Shown here piece by piece: positions 1,941-25,900 of a DNA stretch of 32,366 nt (its first letter is position 1; each line of letters starts with the position of its first letter). A model generated the notes under the pieces. That model made no database searches. It was given only the letters and a program-made list of their open reading frames with translations, and was not told the DNA's origin. The position numbers and the translations under genes were made by a program. This DNA is from Choristocarpus tenellus KU-1152 (lineage: Eukaryota > Protista > Phaeophyceae), in contig CAXNAD020000070.1 of the NCBI GenBank assembly GCA_964200185.2, positions 1 through 32,366 of the forward strand, read 5' to 3'.

Positions 1941-4900
1941 CTGTCCATACACAACAAGTTGGTTGGGGTACAAGTACAGCAGAATCATGAGCCTGTCATC
2001 ACAGTCATCAATATATTCCACAAACCAACGCTGTACCCACAGAAATATCATCAACTGCAGGCCTTGAAAGGAATGATTGCATCGACCTCAAATACTTCAC
2101 CAAGAACTCCTTGATGCAAGCTTCTATTACCAACAACACAAGTGCGACATACGCATTCTACAATCAACTATAAGTAGATGATACAAAGGGTTATTTTTTC
2201 GTCTGAATCATTTCTACCAAAGGCACATTTCAAGTCTTGCAAGAGGAACGCACTAGTGTCTTCACACACAATAAGGCACTGAGATCGAGAGAACTTCACA
2301 AAATACATTTCTTCAATCTGCTTTCCAAAAGGCATTTTCAATCAAGAGCTTGTGCGTTGCATAAAGGACCGTCGAAAACAAAGTGGGACAACAATCCAAA
2401 CATAGACAACAAACAATCAGGGAGGCGGAATCCTCTATGTGCACTTTCAGCTGTGATTAAATCAATTTGTCAGCAACATAGTGCTAATAGTTCAGAATAT
2501 CATACAGAGGTTTCTGTCTGAAAGGTTCAAGAAATGGAGTTACTCTCTCTACTTCAGTGTCACCAGTATCCTCAAGAAAAGAGTCTCTAAAAGTAAACAG
2601 TACTAACAAAAACAAAGAGAGAGAGCTGAGATACTAATCATTTACCATTACCTCCCCTGCCTACATGCAGCACACATTCTACAGGTGCACAAAACAATAA
2701 AGTAAACATTCCTCACCAACGCTTATCACCCCTCACCTCAAGAAGCTCACTGAGGAACGGAATGCACTCTGGCAGTAGCGCCAAGAATTCCTCCCCTACC
2801 ACCTCAAAGCACTGATGCAAGCACACAAGTGCTGCCACCCTCACCCCTGCAACATCTGATCTGGAGCGGAGCATTATGGCGTTTACCAGCCCCTTCCACA
2901 TTGCATCCTTCCCAACCGCAGCCGCCAGTTGGGCCATACATGGTGCTAAACACTTCTCTGCAAAATCCCGACAAACCGCCACTTTTCTTTTGCCACGTGA
3001 GAACAAAGAAGATGAACCATCACTGGGAACAGTTTCCTGTTGAGCTGCATGGCACTCCAGGTGTGCTACCAAGGCCGGCATTACCGAATCAAAGCGTACC
3101 TTGTTCACAAATCCTTCCCGGTCAAACAGGAAGCACTGGTGCAATGAAGAAATAATCAATCGGGTCATGTCCATTCGCCGATGCCAGGATTCTCCAATCG
3201 AACCTGCCCCATCAACGCTTCTGCTGCCATCCTCCGACTCAGACATATCCATATCTTCACTCTCCCCTCTGCTCTTTCCTGCCCGTTTCCTTTTTCCCTC
3301 CTTTTTCTGTGGTGCACCATCCTGGTTGACCTTCCTCCTACTTTCACTGTGCTCCTCACCCATGCTGCTAGCAGCTTCGAGGTCCTCCCGACAGTCCTCC
3401 AGTACATGTGCAAAGTATGGCGTAAAAATACTCTGCAGAAAATCCACAACAACGCCAACAAGATGGGCACAACACAGAACAAAGGAAAACAAAAATGGTA
3501 AGGAACTTCCACCAGTACTTACAAACACACGGGTACAATGATGAGGATCAAGTCTCTCATTGCTTTCCTGTGTGTCTAACAGAAGATACCACTTGGGCAA
3601 CCAGACCTAGACACAAACAAGTTACAACACACCCTTTCAAAAACGTAACCTCAAAAATCACAAAGTCCATAGACCATCATCATCCTTTCCTCAACATCAA
3701 GTGTAACACTGACCTTGAGTCCTGCAGACAAGCTCTCTAGCACTCGGTAGAATGATAGTCTCCTGTCCAGGCCATTAAGCTCGCTCCCCTCTCCCTCCCC
3801 CAATCCACCAGCCATTGACTTCCACTCACAAAGTCGCAAGAAGACAGGTCGCATCTGGGCCTCACTGAGGTGCATGACCACGGCAACAAGCGACTCAGCT
3901 GCCTCAGAGTCCACCAGGTCAGCACCCTCTAGTCCTCTACTTCGAGCGATGTTGGAGGCATACACCCTTCTGAAGTCCAGTGCCCTCATTATTAGGTTTG
4001 TGAGTTGTGGCAGAGCCTCTGCGACAGCATCTCTGCTCAAACCAGTCACAACCTGACCAAATCAAGCGTGTATTATGATGGGGGTTTATTGTCACTGTAG
4101 TGTGTATGCACAGAGTACTATACTAAACTCATGTATTCCACATTAGAGTTTCATGACATTTCTTGTCATGGCAACAAACCAGCAATGAATTCGTCCCACA
4201 ACAAAGCTGCGAATCACCCACACATTCAACAGCTTGGACAACCAACAACAGACATCTTATCAAAATCAACCAAACACTGCGTATCACAATTCTGAAACCT
4301 CCTTCCGAAACTACCACAAAAGAAGTCCTCAAAACACAGAAATGGCCCATCGTGCAGCAACCTTTCCTACCCGAAAACAACTTCTCAATCAACAAAAAAT
4401 ACTCCCTTGCTTTGTGCTAACAATCCAACCTACCCATTGTCACAAAGGGAATAATACCTCGCGGATGTATAGCATAAGACGCGCCACAGATTGGACGACA
4501 TCCTTCCCTTCCTTCTCTACCAGCAGACTATCATAACTCTTGCACATCGCTGGCACAAGCAACCTTGACTCCACTCCTGCCGCTACGAGGGTGGCTACAC
4601 GATCACAAGCTTGCCGGATACTCCCCCCCGGCTGATTTCCCGCCCCTTGCCTACATTGCAGTGTAACAACTAGAATCCGCACAAGGTAAGGACTCAAAAA
4701 GGTTGGCAGACTGGCAGCCACAGTTGCCACAGCTGAGAGTGCACTTGTCTCTAAAAGGGACGATGCCCTCTTTCCCTTGCTTTTTGTAACAGTTACGTCC
4801 TGGCTAACTTCAAGGGCATGAAGCATGGCTGGGAAGAATCGTGGAAGACATGGGAATGCACGTGGTCCCAAAACTGCACAAAGCGTTGCAAGGACCAAAA

Positions 4901-7900: not shown

Positions 7901-10900
7901 TCCACCACCAGAGTTTCATTCAACACGTGACAATGTGAGGCAGTGAAGTGGTAAAAAATAATAACTATCTCAAGTCCACCTACCCATCATATGCCGAATT
8001 AGACAGGGGCACAACCAGGAGTCCTTCCTCCCCATTGTCGGCGCCCAACCCTTCAGGCGCTACAAACACCCTCATTGCTTTTTTGATCACCTCTAGGTCT
8101 ACCTTCCCCTCCCTTCTCGCAACTCCCAAGCATAGGCGATGGCAGGCTTGCACAAGGCCAACAAGGGCATTTACCTTTGAACACAAGCACGAGCAATATA
8201 AATACACACACAGATAGTCAACGGAGGAAACGCACAAGATCAAGGAACTCTTAACAATATCGTTTCCCAATGCACACATCATGTAACTTCGGAACAATTC
8301 ACCTCTGGTTTAAGACATTAAAAAGTTGCAACAAAATTGCTTATACCAGAATGTTTACATTAAAAACAACCGACATGTGTGCTAATCACTATTGGAAACG
8401 ATCTGAACATTTACCCACATTTAAATCAAACAATGAAAGCTACATGTTGGAGGAGTATGGTCAGCACCAACTCCTCTACTGTAATGTACGGATATCTGAT
8501 TATCCAGGTCCGAGTGAGGTAATAGCCGGACCAAGAATGCCCAGAATTCCGCCTTGTCAAGGTCCATCTAGCGCTACCCATTGGAAGCCTCACTGGCGGG
8601 TGAGAAAATAACCGCTTAGAGGGGCAAAAAAGGGCGCTTTTCTTTCAGTCGCATTTAGCTTCTTTCTACAAATCATTTTTGTACCAATTTTCCTTCACAT
8701 GCCAAAAGAAACCAAACAGGCAGTTCACACAAGCAGGAGTGGATAACAACAGTGGATAACACTAGCACACATTTGTCATGCAATGTATTGATGTACTGCA
8801 TACTTCCAGCAATTGAAATTCTACTGGACTCATGCATACATGATTAATCAGAGCAACAGATATCAACGCTCATTACCCCCCAGACAAAGGACACATTACA
8901 AAAAATCACTCTACAGTACTTACCAACATACAAAAGAAAATGCCCCAAGAGAATTTATACTCCAAGAATGATAACAGAGCCTACTCATCGCTACACACCC
9001 CTCAGTACATGCACCCACAACATACCTGTGAACGTGGCTCCGCACAGTGGCAAGTGTGATGAGCAAACTCAACCGTACGCACTTCATCCTTCTTCAACTG
9101 ACTTCTACCACCACCACCACCATCTTTTAACTCTCCCGCCATGTTTGTAACCTCATCCTTTGCAGCCTTGCACAGCAAAAGCGTAGTCACAATGTGCAAG
9201 CAATCCTCTCCCAGGGATCCCACTAGGGTTCCAAAAAGAGGTGTCTTGGAGTGAACCGGTGTGGAATCAAGGACCCTCACAAACACCTGCTACGTTTGCA
9301 GCGAGTGTGGATTCATCAGCAAGGAACATTTTATATACTCTTCAACAATACTACAGGGGTTCCTTCATTTGTTCATGTTCTTAGAAAGACAGAACCTCTA
9401 TCCACCATCCTTCACTTCTATCCAATAATAAATCAATCAACGCACAGATTGTTCTTTAACTACACACAAGAATAACCCACAAAACTCTCAAAGTGTTCCT
9501 CTTCTTCTACATTTTCCACATTTCTCAACACTAGTTGCTCTAGTATACTCCCCAGTCATCAACCAACACCCTCATTTCATAACAGAATCTCATACACAAT
9601 CTATTTCTAAATTGGCTTGAGAGTGGAGATCAATAAAAGTTACACTCAATACTTTGACTAAGTAGTACAATTATGACCAGTCAGAAGAATACATGCACTT
9701 GAGAATGGAAATATCCCTATACTTCACCCTCTAAAAGAAAAAGTACTTAATTCTTTTCAAAGACTGTTCGAAAATCTGACAATTTCGAGTACAAGCAGAC
9801 AAACTACAACTGTTCTAAGAGATATCCATCCATCCACCCAGTTTTCCTGTAACACTCAAAATTGTCTCTTTTTTTGGATGTACACCTACAAGATACTAGT
9901 TTCTTTTCTAATCTTGACCACACGCCAAAAATATTTTCCCTGCACTATCCAAATCCGCTCAACTCAATCATCGCTCACCTCCACAACATACTGAGCGCCA
10001 ACTCCAGACTTTTTCCCGTGCTCCTTGAGTGCTGGCACGATGGTTCTCACAGCCTGTTGAGTCAATCGCACTGACCCCTCTCCGTCACTTCCCCTCACAC
10101 CTCCGCTAGCTTCTGCCACTGCTGAGGCTCCAAGGACATCCAGAAGCACAGGCAGTCCTACAGCCATCTCCGCCGGGAACAACTGAGTCATACGGGCAAG
10201 TAACAACAGCCCACTATTTCTGCTCGTCAGAAAATGGAAAACAGTACAAAATACGGACAACTATTAAAACAAAAAATGAGACAAAAAGGAGAGGGTCCGA
10301 TACAGAATATCTAGCACAACAACATGATCAAGATTTTGTACTACACATTAAAAACAGAATTGCATACGGGCTCAAGTTTCAACAGACACGTCCAACTTCC
10401 TTCAACATTTTACATCCGTCGATCTTTACACAAACCTCGATATCTTGCTCTACCAACCTATTAGCTCTCGGTACGAATTGCAAATAAGATCAATGCACAC
10501 ATCTCTAGAGAAAAAATACTTGATCACATGAACCGTAGTCATTCTTGACATCGAGGAATGTGAACATTCAGCTTTAGTGTGAAAAGTATCACCACTCTAC
10601 TCTCAACAACGGGAAGCATCACAGTCCGTAACTGTCACACACACACACCTCAAAACAACAACAAGTTCATGCTTAGTAGTGTTAGGGTTCGTGAACAAGG
10701 CAGTAAGACTCAAGTTCGAACCGAACACCGAGATTTCAGCGTTACCATCTCTGACCACCCTTTGACATTACAGCCTGAAACATCCAACATGGGCAAACAA
10801 TCTACTTTCTTATGGTAGTGTTAGGTGCCTCCCTTCTTCAACAGAACATTGTCGTCAACAACCAACCTACTTTCTACTTGACATCGATTGTGGACGTTCA

Positions 10901-13900
10901 GCATTAGCATGGAAGTAGATCACAGCTTCTCTCACAATAGAGGGAAGGATCAGGTATGCATTTTGTCTTCCTAACGTCTCACAGTCAACAATTTATCAAC
11001 GGAAGAAACACACATTAAGCCGTTTTTGCACTACTGACTGCTCATAAGATTGAGCCACTTACATTCAACAGAACATTGTCATCAACAACCAACCTACTTT
11101 CTACTTGACATCGATTGTGGACGTTCAGCATTAGCATGGAAGTAGATCACAGCTTCTCTCACAATAGAGGGAAGGATCAGGTACGCATTTTGTCTTCCTA
11201 ACGTCTCACAGTCAACAATTTATCAACAGAAGAAACACACACTAAGCCGTTTTTGCACTACTGACTGCTCGTAAGATTGAGCCACTTACATACAAGTCAT
11301 CTTAGTCTAGCATAGGTTCAGACTATGTCACCTCAGGCTTTGTTCCATACTGGAGTCACGACCTAGCTCTGAATCCCCCTTAACACAAAGAAAATAAAAC
11401 AACTATGTATACAGATATATATACTATTTAAACTCTACAAACTCTAGCGCTTGACTTGACAGTACAAGACTCGGAAGACTAGTATTATAATAGAACTCCA
11501 TATTCCAAAAAAAACAAATGTACACAATTCGTTGTGCGGTTTATATTTTAGAAAGGTGTTCATCAAAATGTACTACATTACACTGTACCACATCTCATTA
11601 CTACAAAAAGACATCTCTGTCAAGCCACTTGATCCAAAATTGAGGTAAGTTTAAAATTATATTGTCATACACAAGCATGCACACCTCCCTTACACCTGTC
11701 AACGATTGGCCCTAACAAATTCAAATTAAAAAAAATCGACTACCTACAGTATCAACCAAGACACAATACAAGAGAAAAAAATACACTTCAAAAGTGTGAG
11801 GCACAGCAAACATGGACTTTACACTAAACATACACGGCAACAATGAAATTATACTACGCAAAAGGCGTTCAGCGCCAAGTCATCAATAAGCAGAGCATAT
11901 TAGGAGGCAATTCGTACCTTGTCTGTGGGCTTGGATTATCTCGTATGCACTGAACAACCGCTTCAGCATCATACCCCGCCCTCGTCTCATCGTACAAACC
12001 CTTTCCCCTCGACCAACCCACTCCCCGCCTAAGAATCATTTCTAGAGAATCTATCGTTAGCCACAAACAATACTCTGCAGCAGACACATCCACCGCAGTG
12101 CCTGCCACCGGGTCATCAGAACTAGCTTCTGGCCCAAGTGATGCACTCAGCAGAGGCAAGATCGCACTGAAGAGTGGCCTCACCAAGGCCCAAGATTGAT
12201 TTTTCCACTTTGTTTTTGGTTCTAGAGATTGTTTGTCCCCAGTACTGCGGTCAGAGGCATTGCTCAACGCCTGTACAAGCTCCATCACACCCGAAAGTGC
12301 TACCGCCCAGTCCTTACTGGTCGCATCCAACAAAACCCTCACAGGTATTTCCTTGTCCTCCCCTCCCTTAGAGGGGGTCACCCCTTGCCCCGTACGAGTA
12401 TCTTCCTCCTGAGCATCCAAACGCCTCTTTCGTCGCCTGACAACTCTCTCCTTGGCTGAGTCGGTCTTGAACAATTATTGTACATGACCCAGAAAAGAAA
12501 AAATGGACAACTTTTTAGAGAGGTTAGTTACCCTTTCAGCGAGACTCAAATATTAGACCATTGAATTAAAATTAAGTTGGCCCATCCAACCTCACAAACT
12601 ACAACGCTGAGGACAACAGCTACATATTGTGCTTCCCAAAACAGGACCATGCTCAGCATGGTCAGCACAGATCCATTAGGTTGACCTACCGCTGTTGTCT
12701 TACAAGGAGTCCCACCTTATCTCTAATCTTGGAAGATACGTTCCGTGACAGAAAACAAATGAAGCATGCCCTTTGAGAATTTTCTTGTACTTTACCAAGG
12801 AATAAAGCAACCAGCTATGCTCCATAGCGATTTACCTACATTTCCAATCATAGCTCGACATCAATTATCCTATTTACAATTCATCAGTGACAAATACATG
12901 AAACATACTAGCAAAGCCCTCTCCCTTGGTTCCAATGTCAACAAAATAAATGCATCCATGCAAAAACACCTGCAACAATATTATTTTACTCTGTTCGAGC
13001 ATCGAATTACATTCTAAATTAATCAGGTTTGCTTGGGATAACACAGACCTCAGTCAAATCGCTTACTCAAAAGGATTATTTTCTCTTGTCAAAATTCTGA
13101 CATGAGTGCACACACTTCAAGCTTTGCAAGTTGAGCGACCAAACCTCAAGACGCGCTTTACATACAGTACAACAGTAGTCCAGTCAGAAATTGTAACCCA
13201 CCAAAACCCAAGCTCAGTGCATTCATCTTATTCACAAAATTGACACATATTATCCTTCAATGATAGATATCCACATAGACCATCACATTTTGAGCAGAAT
13301 TTGCAACGAGAAGTATTGCCCAATCAGGCACCTATTTTGTTCAGAAAATCTTCCAACAAATCTAAACCCACTCCAACCTTCAAAATCATTTTGCACTCAC
13401 TTTCTTAGGGTGAGTTGTTCCACAACCACTCATCACCAGGGCATTCACAACCCTGCTAAACTCCTGAGGAGTGACACCCAAGCCACCAAGAGCATTTACA
13501 ATTCGCCACCGTTCTGTTCCTCCAAGGCTAACCTCCAGGATGGTCATGAAAAACACCGTTCTATGCACATACTTCTCACCAACCGCTCCCATTGCTGACA
13601 CAGCACTGTTTGCCACTGCCACCAAGGCCAGCTCCTGGGCCAGACCAGGTGTTCTTAGAGCCTCAATAAATAATGCTCTACCCTCTGCTTGGCCTCCTTT
13701 CTTGCTCTCCTCCTTAACCCGCCTACCGTTGCTTTCCCCGCAAACCTTTCTCTTTTTCTTTTTGTGTAGTCCATCACTTCCTTCAACAGTCGTTGAGATA
13801 TCAGTTCCCGAAGAGCAAAACAGCTCCAGAAGAAGCCTTAGAAGGTGTGCACAACCCTCTTTCGCCGCAATGGAAATAGCGCTTGTGCCTACATTGCTCT

Positions 13901-16900
13901 CATGGTTACGCTCATTCTCCAAGGCTAGACAGTGTCTAAGAAGGGATGAACAACACCTCCTGCAAATATCGCATGCAGACATTAAGAGGTGGTACCAAAT
14001 GACTTGACAATGACTCAGATACCTTCCCTACAGGAAACTTTTGTAAATAGATGGAACACAAATTAGAAAAATTAAGGGTTCTTTTTTGTAATAGTCACCT
14101 TTTTAGGGGACCCTCAATATGATTCACTGCTGCAAAAATATAAAAAAACGTTTCGTCAGTCCAACACAAAGAAAAAGTACATAATCCACGTATACTTACA
14201 CACATTCAGAAGGCCTCAGTGCTATCGACAAAAAATGCATCCATAGTTATCAAGATGTACGGATATCTGATTATCCAGGTTCGAGTGAGGTAACAGCCGA
14301 ACCAAGAATGCCCAGAATTCCGCCTTGTCAAGGTCTATCTAGCGCTACCCATTGGAAGCCTCGTGGGCGGGTGAGAAAATAACCGCTTAGAGGGGCAAAA
14401 AAGGGCGCATTTCTCCGACTGTATTAACACTAAAGTCACTATTAACCATACAAAATGTTACCGTCACACTCATCTACAAAATGCATGAAACGTGACAGGT
14501 TGGAAAAAAAATGTAGAGAAATAACAAGTCAACAAGTAGCTAAAACCACCGCATTAAGATAAGACCAAGCACAAACGATGATCAGTTTCCCTACTAATGT
14601 TCCAAAATCTACTTTCATCCACCCCAACACATCACACCTCATGATTCCTTCCGACCACCTCAAGCACGATAGCAAAACTGCAGCCATCTTTGGCTCCCGG
14701 CGCCCCAGTCTTGACGCCCATGCCACCAAGTACGTAACCAACACCTCTCCGTCCTTGTCCCCAATCCCTCCTTTCCCACCCGGGACAAGCTCAAGCCTCA
14801 GAACCTGCTCCAGATGCCGTCCATGCAACACAAGTTCTGCTTTAGCCTGAACTAACCCTTTGCATAGCTCCACCACAACCAACAGCGAGGGAGCGCGCAA
14901 GGATGCCGGCTTAAACTCCTTGCCATCAAGTTTTTTACCCGACCTTTCAAGGGAGCTCGAAGAAGATGCTAGTGGTGCAATGGGCATAAGGTTCTCTTCT
15001 TGCAATTCAGGGCCACCAGTGGTTCTAAGAGCATCTTTCCCCTTCCTCTTACCCGGCGATTTTTTTTTCTTTGAAGACCTAGGGGAAGTAGCAGAGGCGG
15101 AGGGGCTCTTTTTTGTCAAAAGCTCTCCGTACTCCGCCAGGGTGCTGGCAAGTAGGAGTCCGGCATTGCGTGTACACTGCATTAAAAATCACGCAATGGG
15201 ACAGACGTGATGATGAGACCAGAGAGTGGAGAGACGAGGCAAACCAATTGGGCACCAAGACATCAAACTTCACTTGACCCACGCAAACACACGCACACAC
15301 CAGCCATCTTTGAAAAAAAATAACGCGAAAAGGGCCTTAAGTGGTCGGACACCTACCAACTCCATATACGCTCGTTCACCTATTCAACAAATTATTCACA
15401 ACCAACCTCTAACTCAAATCTTGGCCGTCGGCTTACTCTTTACATTTACATTTCTTCAGTGATATATATGTGGAGATTTAGTGGCCACAGAGCAAACAAT
15501 CGAGCCACAACGAGAGATAATGACAACGAACAAAAGATAGGCAGCACCCACTTCCTCCCCATCATCATCTCCAACTGCTGTAACCCCTGTCCACCCTAAA
15601 AAGCAACCCAAATCTCCTAGCAACACCGACGCTATCCTTTACAATTCGTCAGTACGACCTGAAAAGGACACGGTACAGTCTCATCAATCTTCCTGGTTTT
15701 CAGTACCAAAGTGCCACAACACGAGGAATCAGCACTTGACCCTCCAGCGGCAATGGCTATCAGCCCAGGGTCGGGGAGCAAGTTCGTCTGGCATCACAAC
15801 ACTATGAAAGCATACAGAACATATTCCTATTGTGTACAGCAGCAACTTCAACAGCCACTTTGCATACAATTCACTGTACTATAGAGTGTACGTACGCAAT
15901 TGCAACCTTTGTCGGAAGTATTGTCAGTAACAATATCTTATTACATACATCAAGAAAGAAAATAGTTGGGCTTAACTTGTCAACTCAAAAACAGTAGAGA
16001 GAGATAGAGATATGTAACAGGAGGTGGGTGCATCAAATGTTGGAGTTACTGACAACAGCACTGCAAACACAACCTTGTACCACATACACGAAACCCAGCA
16101 CAAACGTATCCACTGACCTTCCTGTCCGAGAGGAGCGCAAGCAACACCACAGGAAACATCCCCACAATATCCTCTCTTACTCCATCCCCTCCAACAGTAG
16201 AGGAGGCCTCGGCTGCAGCCTTAATAAATGTCGATGCCACGCACAACGATTTGGAGGCAGAGGTCTCTGCCTTGTCTACTCCTTCTCGAGAAGATTCTTC
16301 TCTAGATTTGCTTGTGCTTTTGTCTCCTCTCCACCCTCTGTTGTGGTGACTATTTTTGATCAAGACAGGTGTATTATCATTGGACTCAACTCCAACATCT
16401 TGAGATGGTGTTGGAGTGGTGTAGAGTGAGCCCAGAGTCAGGGCTGCTAGGACAGGAAGAGGGCGCATTTCGTAACAGTTGAGAAGGATAGAACCAGCTC
16501 CTTCCCAAGCAACGATACTCCTGTAGAATTGATAAGCAGGTAGAACCAGGGCAGCACAACACGGGAAAGGGGGAGGGTGAGCAAAAGACATGTCGGGACA
16601 AAAGGCAATCGAAACCTCGACACCATACGACAATATCATACCATCTCTGAACTTAACTTTATTTTGAAAAACATTTACTATTGGACCAAACATAGAACCA
16701 AAACGAAAAAATAACTTGCCTCGAAAAAGAGTGTTCGAGCAAATATATACCTTCACAAAACCTGAACCTGACAAGGTGTACAGGAAGGGAACAACTCACC
16801 CTTCTGTTTCTGCCCCCTTTTTTTCCCTGCCAGTCTCATCCATAGCCTCCAGAAGCATCAACAGTATAGCACCCGCTGTCAATTCCTCAACACCTCCGTT

Positions 16901-19900
16901 GACATCCCTAACAACACCAAGGTGGTCTCCTGGAAACAAGGAAAACGGTCTCTCTGGACGAGGGAGGCCAGGTGCCACCCCCCGAAGGTATCCCAGCAGT
17001 ACTGCTGGCGAAGGACTAGGTTGGTGCCCAGGTGTCGAGGCTGATGATGAAGCTTCTCTCTCACCGTACATATCCTGTCCTCGCCTTACTCCAGAGGATG
17101 ACAAGGACATCGTCACAAGATCGGCAACGGCGATAGAGAGAGCTGATCCCTCTTTTCCTGCCTTGGTATGTTCACATGACTTTTTGATTGCCCTAGAGCC
17201 AGCCTCTAGGAGAAGCCACCTTGCCCCGGGGCCACAATGTTTCCATAGAATCTGAAGTTTTCAAAAACATTTTGAACAGAAAATGACAGATTTTGATTGT
17301 GTGCAAGGGGTGGTCATGGTCAGGAGGAAGTCAATACAGGAGGCTTACAGTTGATGCAATCAAGACGCTTTAACTGCGGACAACTACACGCCAATCCAAA
17401 TCATAAGGAATAGTATCTTACTTTTTTTCAACTCTCAACTCTCAGCTCAACTGCTCAAGTATGTTTCATCTTCGTGCGATCATATGTACGTACACACGCA
17501 AGACTGTATCCTTAAGAGCACGAGATACTAAATCACACCAGATGACACACATCCTGACTTTTTTCAGTATTTTTTATCAACCCCAGTAAACTCAACCGAT
17601 GCCTGTTTTTGAATTCTGCACTTCCACAGACGCAAAACAAAGCTAGCGCATCCGTGTCAAGCAAGGCCGAGCTCCTTACGCGCTCAACCATCAAATTCAC
17701 CCTCGAATCTCCTCGTCCAATCCCACATACCAAAAGCCTTCTGTACCTCGAAAGCACAAGACAAGAGTGACTCAGAAGAGAGTTAAAAAGAGAATTCTTC
17801 ACATGGATGTCAAGGCACACGAACTGCGCTTTGAGTCTGCTGTCATCACTGTCATCTATTGCACGCAGTCTTGGCATGTGGTACGCGGTGGTTAAAACAA
17901 AGATAGCCAGTGCATGGCTCTCCCAAAAAATGGCAGTCGACCTCATTTGCAGCATCACACACGGAGCTGAGGCGCGTGTTGCCAAACTGGTGCTTACAAA
18001 ATAGCACCTACACTCCCTGGAAGGTCCGACCTAACCAAGACCAACCCTTCTTTCCCCTTAAATTATTTGTTGGTTGTAATACAGAACCTATATTTTAAGT
18101 CTGAAATAACAAAGCGCTCTTAAATACTTTTTATTGTCCAAATGTACAAAATATACAACAAAAAAAGTGGCTCTGACTGCAGTTAAAAAGTAACCTCCAT
18201 GTGCATGTCAGCGTTCAAGGTATGCTATCATCATTGCCCCTTTTTCAGTGCATACAAACACACGTACGGAAGGTAAAACTTGAGATTCTGTGCTCTAACA
18301 TGAAAAGATTATAATTCAAGCAATCTGCGCAACACTAAGAAGAGTGCATTCATAAAATTGTTCATCGGGCAGACCATGAGCCTGTAACGTTGGAATCCAA
18401 ACCAGTCAACATGAGACATTCCTCCTAAAGCAATAAAAGAAGCAGTTTCGACCCAAAGTATCTGGGAGGGGGGGGGTCTACACCAGGGTGTCCATTTGAA
18501 CAAAAATCAGGAAAAGTGAATTTACAGTATCCATCCCACGCATGCAACCAAATAAACCAAAAATCGCGACAGGAAAAATTTGACCCCAAATGGACAGCCG
18601 CCACCCTCTCCCAGATACGTTGAGTCTTTCCACTCCCGTGAGAGACCGAACGGGACAAGGGTATTTACTACGTCACATCCATTAACCCGAACAGTCTCAA
18701 CGAATTACAACCTCACAAAAAGGTCAGAAATAATATTACAAACAAAAACAAAACTTGCAACATACCTTCAGGTCCCCCTCGTCCGAACTAACGCTTCCCA
18801 GTGCATCAGCAAGCTTGTCGCAAACGCCCTCGCTCAGAGCCTTCATCCCAATGGTCTTCTTCTCAGCCCCATCAGCACTCTTCACCGCAGAGTTCTCCCC
18901 CTTCTCCCCTTTAGCCTTTGCATCCACCGCCCCTGCATGCTCTCCTACAAACTCCACCGAGGCAAGGCTTTCCAGCAACGCACGACCCAGAGGCCACCCC
19001 ACCGTACGACCCCACACCTCCTTTGCTATTGACAACGCTTCTCGGCCTAGCGATACCACAGCACGCCTTTTTGCCTTGGATGCTCTTATCTCTTCCTTAG
19101 ATCGGCCATCTCTTCCTTCGGCGTCAACCCCCGCACACCTCGCGCGAACGAGATTGTGGGGCCCAGGAACACACTCAAGCAACAGCGGGAAGAATCTTAG
19201 ATTCAAAGAGGTGCCTTCGTCCTCAACAGACCGTGACTCCAAGTCATTCGGGGACTCACCGGTAGTAGTACTACACCACATCACAGCCGATGCACTCAGT
19301 TGAACAAACTCTGTGAGTACGCGTGCGGTTACTCCGTGACTATATCTTGGTCTATCCTCAGACAGTGAGGCAATCCATGGTAAGGCTGCACCAGCAACCG
19401 TAGCAGAGACTTCCAGCAAGCTTCCTTCACCGTTGCCCTCACCGGAGGTTACGCTTTCTCTACTCTCCATCCCCATGTCAACATCATCTTCAACAACATC
19501 GGGTTTACCAAGCAGAACCTGTTGAGTTAGGAACTCACTCCCGAGGAGAGCAAACAGGACCTGTTGCCACCCCCACGCGACCCGTTTGGGAAAAGTGACA
19601 GTAAGAAAGAATCACAAAAGCAAATGGAATATCCTACTCTCATGCACACGCCTTGAAGGAATCATCAACGAAGGACATGCAATAAAACAACTGCTACTCG
19701 CGCTCAGACTACTGCCTAACGGCATTCCTACCCACACTGAATCCTTTCACACGTACCAACACACTGTCCATCCTTCCAGCAATAAATAATACTAGCCAAC
19801 AAGGAACAACTCGTATGCCTAGCGAGCCTTTGCAACCGCAGAAGAGTCCCCAACACAAAATATTACTCTAGTGCAAACAGATAAATGACAAAGATCAATC

Positions 19901-22900
19901 GAAACACAAACTCATCACGTGACTAACATGTGCCTGCTTGCCTTGCAATAAGTGAGTGACGCTTCTAAGACAGCACCTACTCAATGCAGATCAAAAACGT
20001 AACCAGTCGCATGCCAAAAAAAACTAATCTTGAGCAAAAACAACAACAACAAAAAGAGAGCAATACACACAGCTCTCTCTTCCACATCGCAATTCAAGAC
20101 TGACTCTAAGTATCACCTCCGGATCTTCGTCTCGTAACCGACGAAGCAAACTCGGCACCATCTCTCGCCTTGCAGATCTCTTATCCAACAACCCCTGCTT
20201 CTCACCCTCCCCCGTATTCGCAACAGTTGACCCTTGTCGTAGCGCTTTCTCAAGCTGCAACAGCGCTTGCACGCGCACCGTGCCCAAAGGATGTTCAACA
20301 GCTACCGAGATCGAAGTGTGCTCCAAATTGTCTTCTGTCACGGACTTCTTATTATTGACACCATCAGTTGCCGCTTCCATGGAGCCCTCAACACTTTCAC
20401 ATATCTCTTCACGTGTCATCTAACGATACCGAGTCACAACATCGTGACAGAAACAGTTGCACAAACGATGGATGTAGAAATCAAGCAAGGGGAGGTTGAG
20501 AATCGAATTGGACTAAATATCTTCAACAACAAATCCATGTATGGTATCCGGGTACCGACTCGACATATCTGGCAGCACTTCAACAGAGTTTTTTAATCAA
20601 TTGTTACGTATTTCAACAAAACATCATCAAATCAACCTTATCTCAACCGCAATGGTCGAATCAACGTTTGCAACCAGCCAGACACTGCCAAAAAAAGTGA
20701 AAAGACTATTTACCTAGACTAGACCGTACATCCATCTACGCATAAACATTACAAAAATGTATCACGCCACAGGAGAAGATTAAGACCAACACCCCGCCAT
20801 CTCTCATCCATCCTCACCTCCATCAGAGGCAAATGATGCGCCATTCCCGTCACCGAGAACGACGACGTTAATAACGACATGAGTGCCTCCCATTGAACCC
20901 GAGCCGTTCCCTTTCGAGTATTGCTGCTCCCTCCGCCGTCGCCATCTTCATCATCGCCGCCTTCCTCCTGTCCCTTCTTTTCCTCCGCCAGACGCTTCTT
21001 CACTAGCTTGCTGACCTTAGACACTTGAGCGTCCAAATCTGCTGGGTATCGCTGGCATAGCGAACGTAGCACCTGCCACACCGTAACCAAACCAGAAATA
21101 CAGAAGAACAATGTAAACCATCGCGCTACGCAAACACAAACACACTTTTGTTATGCAATCCCTCCCGACAGAACCTTGTGTTTGTCTCTTGCCTCTTGTC
21201 TCTTTAAAACAAGAAGCAGTTTTAAATGTCATTCTGAAACAAAGCTTTCTTGCATTATTTGCTGAGGCGTCACCAACAAACTGGAGTTACTCCTTCGAGC
21301 AGTGTCCCTCTCGCGAGGCAACCGGTAGACGTCTGTTGCCTTGCACAAAATCCAACGGTCTCCATCCCCTCCACAACACTCATTAAATCCTACCAACTTC
21401 TTGTTTTCTTCATGGAGACAGAAACATCGTACTGCCAATTAGGGCGCGGCATCGTAGCAATGGACCTATTCATCATCGCAAATTGAAAACAATCATATTC
21501 TAGCATTGGAAATGCACCGAAGGCCTTACACCTACAACAACACACACTCGGTAAAGTACACTACCCAGCAATGTACGGGTATCTGATTATCCAGGTCCGA
21601 GTCAGCTGATAGCCGGACCAAGAATGCCCAGAATGCCGCCTTGTCAAGGTTCATCTAGCGCTACCCATTGGAAGCCTCGTGGGCGGGTGAGAAAATAACC
21701 GCTTAGAGGGGCAAAAAAGGGCGCATTTCTCCTACTGTATTAACAATGCTAGAGTACTGGATTAGCGTCCTGCACGCAACATCACTCTCGAATCAACAAC
21801 ACGAGGTTCGTGTAAATACTCACACCTACAATAGAAATTGGGGAAAGAAAAATCAAAAGAAGAGTTTCACCTGTTGGCATCCTCTTTCCAAAGTAGAAAT
21901 CTCGATCTCTTTCTTTTCTGATACCTCCATTGCCGCATCCCTCTCATCTTGAACAATAAATGACCAGAAATACAGAGATATTTACGACCAGTGTGTCAAC
22001 TCATTGTAGTAGCGCGTATAAACAAAGAATAAATCAACTGCAGTACAGGGGAGGTAGGTTCAACAACAAAGAATAGCTCTGCTTCCTTATCTTAAAAAAA
22101 AAGCATCCCTTTTTACTTACGTACAGAGTTTGGGATACCCTCAATACAAACAGAATCTTCTTCTGTAACCGTCAGGTAGTCCCATTGTGTGTGTACGGTC
22201 ACCAGATCTCAACAGTTTGAGATATGAATGATATCATACCTTCGCATCGAGATGGTCAGAGGTAACACCCCACCAAATGCAGCCAACACATCTCACAATT
22301 GAACACACCTAAACCACACAAACGAATACACACTATCCAAAACAGAGCCACATGCGCAAAAAAAGCACACACGATGGCACATCAATCTCATCACCAAAGT
22401 TTAATTGAGGTTGGCCGATCATGGATCCACAATCAAGCGAAACACTTCACTGAGGCAACTAACTATTAGGAAAAAAAAGCCAACAGAGCAGCAGCTAGCT
22501 GCAGGTCACCTTCGGAAACAGCTCGCAGGTATACCTTGAGCATGCTGTCTATGAGACGCCTCACCAGGCGAGGAAACGATGAGCTAGGCCAGTGAGGGTA
22601 CGACGAAAGTCTGAGCAAGAAATCCAGGAATGGTTCACCATATCCAAGGTTCTCCACAACTCTGCAAAGGCGTTTTCCAGAGTAACGTATTGGGCAGGGT
22701 GAAAACTGAGCATGCCGTAAACCTCAAGGACTGTGGCATGGCTACCGCCCCCTCGTGTCAAACACTCTTCTGTTTATTTTTAAAAAATAAAATAGCAACA
22801 TCCGGTCCACCGACTATGGAACCATCATGCTGTCAAAATGAAATCTATTTTTTCGGTATAAATATTCCCCCCCAAAAAATGTTCAGACTTGAAAGTACTG

Positions 22901-25900
22901 CCAACAGTCTTGAACGGGAGAGGGACGCCAGAAAAGACACCTGACGAGAACAGTTCAAGTTGGAACTAAGCGACAGCAAACTCGCCAGGACTGGTTGTAG
23001 GAAATGCCAGAACAAAGATTAAAAAAATTACGTTTTCAACTTGTTATCGGATTGTGAAGAACCCTACTGTTCGCAACAAGATAACCAACCCTGTCTGTAA
23101 ATATCAATCATCAGTATGTCCCCCACCCTGCAAGCAAGAGTTCTCAAAAGGTGCATATATTCTGCTCATGCAACAAAACAATAAGCTGTGGGTAGCAGCA
23201 ACTACAACTAAAAGCTAATCAACCAAATATCAATTTCTTCACATCATTATTGGAAAAAAATCATCACAACCGTATCAGAACTGTAACACACCACCTCTGC
23301 AATTGTCCCCTCAAAAAAACGATTCATGTACTACCTACCACACACACCAACTACGAGTAACGCTAAGCATGAATTCCAGTAACGGCATCAAGCATCGACA
23401 CCACACAAATCGATGCTTGACGCACCTTTGCACAACTGCCCATAAAAAGGCGCTAGCATCATAGCTCCCCGCCAGTCCCGCCAAGACCCCTACTAGTCCC
23501 TCCATCCTACACATCTTCTTCAGTGCTGCATTCGGCACAATCTGCGGCAGCAATTTATTGGAGAAATTTCCTGCCTGACTCTGAGGAAAAAAATGAGAAA
23601 ATAGCATTCGTAAGTATCTCCGCAAAGCCATTTACTTGTAATAACTGCATGCAAAAATACAACAATTTCTGCAACAGATTTCAAAGATCCCCAGCAGAAC
23701 TAGTTGCATCAATAGATGCCTCAAACGATCTACTGCAACTACTGAAGGAACAGATCATCGTAAAAAAAAGAGATCTCTACTGCAGCATCTCTACCTTTAA
23801 GTGATAGCAACTTCCCTTTAAGAACCCTTATAATTCTAAAACATAGAATTGTTTTCCACAATTCTCTACATTGGTCACTCGATAGGTATCATTTACAAAA
23901 ACATTATTTCCTTTTTATCTGAAGAAGATAATGAATAATACACATGTACCTACCATGTGAAGGCAACAAACCTGTACACCAGTTTCCATAGACAACCGCA
24001 TTAACAGCTGCTCAATGCAACAGGCAACAAACACTACTTGAATTGAGAGAAGCGTCAGATCTTGTCTTTTGTTGGTGAGATCAGTCCACAGCCACTACAG
24101 CTGGAGTCATCTGACACGCATGAATATTTTGACAAGCTTCATCCTTCGCACCAACAAAACAACTACAATCCTCCAAAAAACATACACAACTGCTGACTAA
24201 TTGACAACACAAAGAACGGAAATCTATTATCTCATGTTTTTATTACCCTAGATAAACTTCTGCTGCTACCATACACCCAAAATATACCTCACACATACCA
24301 CTAAACAGACACTTGACGTCAGATCTTGTCTGAAAGTGAGTAGATCAATCCCTAGTCACTTCAACTGGGGTCATCTGAGTCAAAGCAATATTTGGACAAG
24401 GTTCATCACTCGCTCTTACAGCCTACATTTTGTAGTGATAGTTAACCGTTTCTAGAGTTATTGGGAAAGGAACCGAATGGGATCTCTTACAATCGTTTGC
24501 TTTTCTTAAAAAGACATTACCTCCTATACAAGACCCAAATCATAACCCTTCATACCAATATGCACACACTTTGAGTCAGATGCTGTTTGTGAGCAACATC
24601 AATCTCAGCCTCTAGCATGAGCATCATCTGAGATAGACAATCTAACTGCATTACTCGAGTTAAGGTGACTATATACATGTTTCCAATCATATCACCAAGA
24701 TTTGGTCATTAAAGGGCACGACCCTTTAAAATCCTAGCATCTAAATTCTGAACTACAGAACTGCCTTACTTAGTATTAAAAATTGTGAAAACAAAAACAG
24801 AAGACTAACCAAAATATAAATCATGAAAAGCCTTAACCTCAATTGTTCTGGAACAGAGCAAAGTACTCCTAATATCAACGATGTTATCACTATCATTAGA
24901 ACTACAAAAACGACAACTCACAAAACAAGATCAACAAGAACTGTAATTTCATATCCATTCACATAATACAAATTGAATCGTCATCCACAAGCCATAAAAT
25001 ATTAGAAAAATCCTCCACACACTGTTCAGCCGATATGTTTCTTTGATCTCATACACTTCATTCACCCTTCTGAAGCCCCAATAACCATCCCCACCTGCAT
25101 CACTGCAATCGCACAAAGCAATGGAGGCTCCATTCCCCCCTGACAGGGGCGACAAAGCAAGGACTTCATTGTTGCCCCCAACACCTCTGGTGCTAGTGAC
25201 CCCCTCTCGGCCACCATAGCTAAGATCATGTACGCTGACATCTGCAAAACAAACCAGTTGACTTGGTGATATATTTGAGGTATTTTTGGGTCAAGCCCGT
25301 AGGAGTAACGGCAAATCAGCGAGCATGTGAATAAGGGTCAAACCCATGGATAGAGCCCTCTATATAAAATACCAGTACAATAATGAGGTCCTGATAATCA
25401 CAATGCAAACAAGCGTGCACTGTTCACCGGAACAAGAGACACCGAAAACCTTATTACCCATACAACCTAAAATTTCATAGCACAGAACTCACTTCAGTAC
25501 AGGTTTATTGCTAGAGCGTACCTGGAACTCTGGACAGTGTGTACTGCCCAACCCATCAAGCACAGTCGGGAGCAATGACCTCAGAGTAGACTCACTCACA
25601 CCAGATGTTCCTAACCCAAACGATTCAACCACTGTGGCTGCAAAAAAAGAAAAGATTTTTCCACGACCCTCAGTCACTGCGGGAGTTGTCGTCGCAGCAG
25701 TAGTGAACATCACATCAGAAGCAATACTGGATGTTACAGCCTCAGCAGTCTGCCGTGCAGAGTTGCACAAGAAGCGAAGCAGGCGTTGATCCTTGTGACA
25801 CCTCTCGGCAATGGCCTGACGAGGGAGTGGGACACCTTTAAGCTGTACAGGTCCTAGAAACTCCCACCTGTCCATGATTCCATTAGATTTTATGGAAGAC

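Follow-up and report, generated by a model that had tools for sequence, protein, structure and literature searches.

Analysis of a 32,366-nucleotide (nt) stretch of DNA from the brown alga (Phaeophyceae) Choristocarpus tenellus KU-1152 (contig CAXNAD020000070.1 of assembly GCA_964200185.2, positions 1 to 32,366, hereafter the window) revealed three copies of a short sequence that very probably encode, as paralogues, a single small nucleolar RNA (snoRNA) of the box H/ACA class. The copies lie in introns of the UTP10/HEATR1 gene, and the predicted target of the RNA is the uridine of large subunit (LSU) ribosomal RNA (rRNA) equivalent to U2191 of yeast 25S rRNA. The RNA appears to be real, was not previously filed and is of a well-known kind. 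Judged by its complementarity to the rRNA, it most likely directs the conversion of this conserved uridine to pseudouridine (Psi).

The three copies, here called A, B and C, were aligned together with 30 nt of flanking sequence, and a nearly identical block of ~160 nt stands out from unrelated surroundings. Each is ~156 nt long, lies on the minus strand and occupies a separate UTP10/HEATR1 intron, at window positions 8482–8637 (A), 14253–14408 (B) and 21569–21724 (C); copy A, for example, extends from the base of the 5′ stem to 3 nt beyond the ACA. A repeat finder grouped them as a single family of three members, 89–100% alike, with start-to-start distances of 5771 and 7316 nt, and in a script comparison of the three copies the pairwise identity of the RNA body was 93–95%. 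The likeness is confined to this body. The 100-nt flanks score 0.54–0.66 against a shuffled mean of 0.56, which is the level expected by chance, with the exception of ~22 nt directly 5′ of the body that are common to copies B and C. In A, B and C, respectively, the 5′ stem has its base at 8637, 14408 and 21724, and the ACA triplets are at 8487–8485, 14258–14256 and 21574–21572, all on the minus strand. On the sense strand, every copy ends in ...CCGUACAU; ACAU is present in all three, one further U is common to A and C, and beyond this the flanks diverge, so that the likeness stops 1–2 nt past the ACA.

A whole-genome BLAST search with one copy returned three loci only in the 164-Mb assembly, and a covariance model (R1) built from the three copies found the same three loci only at E values up to 1, with scores of 212.7 (A), 212 (B) and 209.6 bits (C). 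A previous reading of the window from its letters alone (the sequence-only reading) had placed three copies at these positions, all in the sense of the host gene, and had regarded them as paralogues spread over the introns of one gene, proposing a genome-wide BLAST count and a covariance model as checks. Its positions are borne out by the alignment, the repeat finder and BLAST; both checks yield three loci, in one gene and one orientation; and all three copies are intronic and, like UTP10/HEATR1 itself, on the minus strand. Its limits for the conserved block hold at the 3′ end, 1–2 nt past the ACA, and need a small correction at the other, where the block reaches slightly further 5′ than had been given.

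The host gene was recognised in several ways. A 295-amino-acid (aa) open reading frame at 2713–3600 on the minus strand carries a BP28CT domain, and in a search of the PDB the C-terminal exon matched residues 1992–2116 of human HEATR1 (E 1.3e-14) and fungal UTP10; the same search with a middle exon gave no match. A protein search identified an annotated 2798-aa Choristocarpus tenellus protein, 99% identical, and a tblastn comparison of this protein with the window placed 28 minus-strand exons from 28885 down to 1851. The gene thus spans 1851–28885. The introns that hold the copies, at 8175–9025 (A), 13960–14637 (B) and 21073–21870 (C), all have GT..AG ends.

Transcript evidence came from three public runs of one study that contain the sequence, two of them DNA-like and one RNA-like, all available as contigs, which give no RNA ends or levels. 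In the RNA-like run, depth is 300–500 over the exons and 12–39 over the introns, and contigs cross minus-strand junctions at 9283/9976, 10219/11918 and 12465/13401. The introns of copies A and B are confirmed by spliced RNA-like contigs: the loose end of one connects ~9024 with 8171, and that of another leads from 13961 to 14640. For copy C, the intron is a prediction from its GT..AG ends and the tblastn match of the annotated protein only. The exon end near ~9024 is joined in the RNA-like contigs either to 8171, in the next exon, or to 7528, and these alternative joins suggest an isoform that skips the exon at ~7983–8174.

The consensus fold from RNAalifold and the single-sequence minimum free energy fold agree on a hairpin–hinge–hairpin–ACA arrangement. 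In the 5′ hairpin, a lower stem of 7 base pairs (bp), which contains a 2-nt bulge, is separated by an internal loop of 8+8 nt from an upper stem in two parts. An 18-nt hinge leads to the 3′ hairpin, whose lower stem of 5 bp and upper stem of 10 bp flank an internal loop, and the ACA comes directly after this hairpin. In copy A, for which window positions were obtained as 8646−n for alignment column n of A2, the ACA box is at 8485–8487, where the likeness between copies ends 1–2 nt beyond, and the H-box position, 1 nt past the 5′ hairpin, is at 8564–8569 and reads AGAUGG. The corresponding hexamers are AGAUAG in copy B and AGAUGA, a canonical H box, in copy C. Differences between the three copies are confined to the apical loop, the hinge, an internal loop or stem pairs, and none falls in a guide strand. 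One of them is a double-sided stem change from C-G to U-A in the upper stem of the 3′ hairpin of copy B (alignment columns 117/136), so that the compensatory change reported in the sequence-only reading is real; in copy C the lower stem of the 3′ hairpin is topped by a C.C mismatch. An assignment as a small Cajal body-specific RNA was considered and rejected, as no conserved UGAG (CAB box) was seen in the apical loops.

The internal loop of the 3′ hairpin provides the principal predicted guide. In copy A, its 5′ strand, CUGGGCA (8538–8544, minus strand), is the exact complement of UGCCCAG in LSU rRNA, and its 3′ strand, AAUCA (8497–8501, minus strand), is the exact complement of UGAUU, giving 7+5 Watson–Crick bp. 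The third U of UGAUUUCUGCCCAG (UGAUUU) and the C that follows it stay unpaired beneath the upper stem. Counted from the first A of AAUCA, the ACA is 14 nt away in Choristocarpus, or 15 nt if the unpaired base beside the upper stem is included; the usual spacing between the target and the H or ACA box in H/ACA RNAs is 14–16 nt. Because the true nuclear LSU ribosomal DNA (rDNA) is missing from the assembly, pairing was tested on 11 metagenome rDNA units spanning the small subunit (SSU) to the LSU, which were fetched with an 18-mer from a decayed relic, and on the relics themselves. In each of the 11 units the predicted site is the sole contiguous 12-bp match made entirely of Watson–Crick pairs, and the other candidates need 2–6 G.U pairs. 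When the strands of the 3′ pocket were shuffled, 28 of 20,000 versions (0.0014) reached 12 pairs anywhere in a 6.6-kb unit.

The identity of the target was established by numbering. The sequence UGAuUuCUGCCCAG corresponds to positions 2192–2205 of the Rfam eukaryotic LSU consensus, and the third U is position 2197. A published table of yeast modifications lists Psi2191, Cm2197, Am2220, Am2256, Psi2258, Psi2260, Psi2264, Psi2266 and m5C2278 (PMC5699541). An offset of +6 places all nine on the right base of the Rfam consensus, whereas offsets of +4, +5, +7 and +8 each place at least one of the four pseudouridines of the H69 region on a base other than U. We conclude from this single fitting offset that the third U is U2191 of yeast 25S rRNA, the site guided by snR32. 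The literature equates the same yeast residue with Arabidopsis U2181, which is assigned to snoR135 and was mapped by Sun et al. 2019, and with human U3674 (PMC2685112; PMC8351944 supplement). Modification at this site is documented in yeast and Arabidopsis and listed for human (PMC5699541; PMC8351944 supplement). A literature search by target sequence returned primer lists only.

The account of this guide in the sequence-only reading stands up well. The 5+7-bp pairing and the 14-nt spacing were reproduced by hand and by script, and its identification of the target with yeast Psi2191 and snR32 is supported both by the offset fit over nine modifications and by the published equivalences. It had proposed pairing with the LSU rRNA of the species as a check; the organism's own intact LSU is not in the assembly, and in the 11 metagenome units used instead the site is the sole all-Watson–Crick 12-bp match in each. 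That reading described the 3′ guide and the ACA correctly and missed two features, namely the possible further guide formed by the 5′ pocket and the non-canonical H box of two of the three copies.

Comparison with a second alga extends the family beyond Choristocarpus. A HEATR1 protein encoded on a 1.69-Mb contig of an ENA assembly (P0004), met among relatives of the C-terminal exon, is 51% identical to that of Choristocarpus and 61% identical to that of Ectocarpus sp. 13, and the genome is probably that of another brown alga. Searching its HEATR1 gene (locus L158) with R1 revealed two sense copies, at 10627–10797 (65 bits) and 14094–14265 (76 bits), which are ~70–75% identical to those of Choristocarpus and, as judged by exon homology, occupy different introns. 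A BLASTN comparison of the two HEATR1 loci picks out the snoRNA copies, the coding exons and one other non-coding block, a C/D snoRNA. In an alignment of the five sequences, UUCUGGGCAUUC, AAUCAGA, UUUGCC, CUUCCA and GUACAU are invariant, and the apical loops vary in length and sequence. CUGGGCA and the ACA are common to all five; the first A of AAUCA lies 13 nt from the ACA in the second alga, or 14 nt with the unpaired base by the upper stem. When the H/ACA structure is imposed on the five sequences, 97% of the cells pair, compared with 26–48% when the partners are slid, and four pairs show double-sided changes, compared with 0–1 in the slid controls. The evidence fits a functional H/ACA family with purifying selection on its guide strands.

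Other HEATR1 loci were less informative. Loci L148–L150 are intron-less transcript contigs, and L153 and L155–L157, which hold the last few kb of the gene only, gave no convincing R1 match. The best partial match, at L156 1714–1804 (E 0.52), covers the 5′ hairpin and an AGAUAGA hinge only and precedes the BP28CT exon in the HEATR1 contig of another alga; a diverged relative and a chance match are both conceivable.

The 5′ hairpin also contains a pocket with complementarity to LSU rRNA. In copy A, UUUUGCC (8623–8629, minus strand) pairs with GGCAAAA and CUUCC (8583–8587, minus strand) pairs with GGAAG, forming 7+5 Watson–Crick bp around the U of GGAAG-U-C-GGCAAAA. The match extends over 12 bp in five of the 11 rDNA units and over 11 bp in a further four, and its target lies 269–430 nt upstream of that of the 3′ pocket. 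The decayed LSU relic on contig C3564 reads AAGGGAATTCGGCAAAAC at the expected place. The target U is position 1914 of the Rfam LSU consensus, which we take, by our own count from the yeast sequence, to be approximately yeast U1903, and it is 13 nt downstream of the U occupied by Arabidopsis Psi1897/human Psi2826. It is absent from the yeast and Arabidopsis modification tables and from the human equivalents given in the Arabidopsis table (PMC5699541, PMC2685112, PMC8351944 supplement).

Several observations weigh against the assignment of the copies to a working H/ACA guide family. The H box is imperfect: the second-alga copies read AGAUUG and AGAUUA at this position, and the consensus ANANNA, which requires A as the sixth base, fits only two of the five sequences, the AGA core being invariant. 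The folding energy is no better than that of shuffled sequences (z −0.71), so that the structural case is comparative, not thermodynamic; moreover, the five-sequence structure alignment was fitted to the model and favours pairing, which makes the slid controls and the double-sided changes the fairer measures. In the RNA-like run, depth over the copies is ~30–37, inside the 12–39 range of other intron stretches. Searches of the assembly for intact nuclear LSU rDNA with exact and mismatch patterns, with the Rfam LSU, 5.8S and SSU models and with BLAST found only plastid operons and decayed relics. No Rfam 15 family matches the window at its gathering score or the loci at E values up to 10, a comparison in which the Rfam holdings for snR32 and snoR135 were not checked; on this result, the RNA corresponds to snR32 and snoR135 in function and is not a detectable homologue of either. 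Finally, the 5′ pocket is 18 nt from the H box in both species, and 16 nt only if the 2-nt bulge is left uncounted.

The last of these points bears on how many guides the RNA carries. It is quite plausible, if somewhat short of probable, that this is a genuine H/ACA RNA in which only the 3′ hairpin guides modification, the 5′ hairpin being structural, with a part in particle assembly, or pairing with rRNA without catalysis. The 18-nt spacing is outside the 14–16 nt range, the predicted U appears in none of the yeast, Arabidopsis or human modification lists compared, and U-rich guides match by chance more often, 86 of 20,000 shuffled 5′ pockets (0.0043) reaching 12 pairs. Set against this, both algae have the same UUUGCC and CUUCCA strings whereas adjacent bases have changed, the pairing adjoins the predicted upper stem exactly, without a gap, and the bulge in the lower stem could give an effective spacing of 16 nt. 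We put forward only tentatively the proposal that the U in GGAAG-U-CGGCAAAA is converted to pseudouridine under the guidance of the 5′ pocket, which we regard as possible rather than probable.

It is very unlikely that the copies are instead structured intronic RNAs acting in cis on the UTP10/HEATR1 pre-mRNA, in splicing or dosage, with a complementarity to rRNA that is coincidental or secondary. Such a role would account for the strict retention of the family within one host gene in two species, and the imperfect H box and the intron-like depth over the copies are in keeping with it. It would leave unexplained, however, that two pockets each match a conserved LSU sequence, at the low shuffle frequencies given above, and that one of them lands on a pseudouridine site common to yeast, plants and human. 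An ACA box and an abrupt 3′ boundary are as expected of a trimmed snoRNA, and the copies sit at different intron positions in the two species, an argument against a function linked to any one splice site. Least probable of all is that a low-copy mobile or repeated element (a short interspersed element (SINE), a miniature inverted-repeat transposable element (MITE) or a segmental duplicate) has come to lie in three introns without any RNA function, since the dispersed repetition in non-coding DNA and the ~22 nt shared by B and C outside the RNA body are outweighed by the presence of three copies only in 164 Mb, in one gene and one orientation (on which copy number and orientation the SINE/MITE reading was rejected), by the lack of inverted repeats of at least 40 nt and of an A-rich tail (no dedicated search for target-site duplications was run), by flanks at chance level beside a body 93–95% alike, and by the occurrence of the family in the HEATR1 gene of a second alga at ~70–75% identity, with invariant guides and compensatory stem changes.

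On the preferred reading, that of paralogous intronic H/ACA snoRNA genes, the known H/ACA pathway provides a straightforward scheme. Each copy would be transcribed within its UTP10/HEATR1 intron and freed after splicing by exonucleolytic trimming down to the RNA–protein core. The trimmed RNA would be bound by dyskerin/Cbf5, Nop10, Nhp2 and Gar1; the genome encodes dyskerin, recognised by its DKCLD domain (116.8 bits). The 3′ pocket would then form base pairs with the LSU rRNA to either side of the third U of UGAUUUCUGCCCAG, a pairing evident in the sequences, and Cbf5 would convert the U2191 equivalent to pseudouridine. The 5′ pocket may confer a candidate second activity at the U of GGAAG-U-C-GGCAAAA. 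At least two algae have kept the family in the same host gene, one of ribosome biogenesis, but in different introns, and this combination points to duplication, relocation or loss of copies inside the gene under selection that fixed the guides.

The introns of UTP10/HEATR1 hold further elements. A pair of sequences resembling box C/D snoRNAs is present on the minus strand at 24053–24156 and 24317–24420 of the window; the exons that flank their intron encode aa 276–326 and aa 326–402. The C box is GUGAUGA or GGAUGA, CAGAUGAC occurs as an internal motif, CUGA stands at the end, and a 53-nt core is 87% identical to L158 556–608 in the homologous HEATR1 intron of the second alga. In the intron of copy C, ~90 nt downstream of that copy, an element at 21429–21480 (minus strand) opens with a C box (GCGAUGAUGA); its sole Rfam match is weak (archaeal sR46, E 0.79), and no clear D box was seen. 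The intron at 10220–11917 contains a 227-nt tandem duplication, 98% alike, at 10837–11290.

The survey of ribosomal sequences in the assembly gave a picture of its own. The exact target 15-mer of the 3′ pocket has a single occurrence, within a degraded LSU fragment of contig C9056, and the Rfam LSU search otherwise detected two plastid operons on contig C1 and fragments on C3564. Decayed nuclear rDNA is scattered over contigs C9056, C3564, C10314, C9714 and C3273. Over long stretches the SSU relics reach only 75–81% identity with genuine eukaryotic SSU. The LSU relics are heavily substituted, and there is one 5.8S copy with no LSU after it. The operons on C1 are two inverted 23S+16S units (39392–44033 and 114881–119522) in a plastid-genome-like setting. 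A further full-length 16S-like gene on contig C71 (22305–23838), which scores 577 bits with the eukaryotic SSU model, could be mitochondrial or bacterial.

Two known guides invite comparison. Saccharomyces cerevisiae snR32 belongs to the same guide class and has the same predicted target uridine, 25S Psi2191, but shows no detectable sequence or covariance-model likeness to the Choristocarpus RNA, given the lack of an Rfam match at E values up to 10. Yeast snoRNAs are mostly independently transcribed, whereas the Choristocarpus copies are intronic and triplicated; they are also equipped with a second candidate guide. Arabidopsis thaliana snoR135 has the equivalent target and likewise carries its guide in the 3′ pocket (P2). 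It is 141 nt in length, compared with ~156 nt for the Choristocarpus RNA, and is located in a non-coding cluster transcript, whereas the Choristocarpus copies are in introns of a protein-coding gene and have no Rfam match. Intronic snoRNAs in genes for ribosome biogenesis or ribosomal proteins are the general arrangement in animals and plants, and the Choristocarpus copies resemble these in being in the sense orientation, in the introns of a gene for ribosome synthesis and in several copies per host. They differ from a cluster within one intron in that three separate introns are used here and that the host is conserved between two algae while the introns differ.

The snoRNAs of brown algae have so far been predicted only in bulk, the loci of Ectocarpus having been called with ACAseeker and CDseeker (PMC4513859). 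The RNA described here supplies a concrete brown-algal candidate guide for one pseudouridine shared by yeast, plants and human, and it extends to a fourth major lineage the evidence that guide RNAs of unrelated appearance maintain this site. The view of how H/ACA guides work is unchanged by these findings. If the 5′ pocket is also active, one RNA would act on both flanks of the variable stretch between the two targets, which we take to be expansion segment ES27, and the predicted second site may be lineage-specific. Overall, if the present interpretation is true, the family would be a snoRNA tied to one host gene across brown algae while switching introns, and it would offer a clear-cut example in which to follow snoRNA copies as they pass between introns of one ribosome-biogenesis gene.

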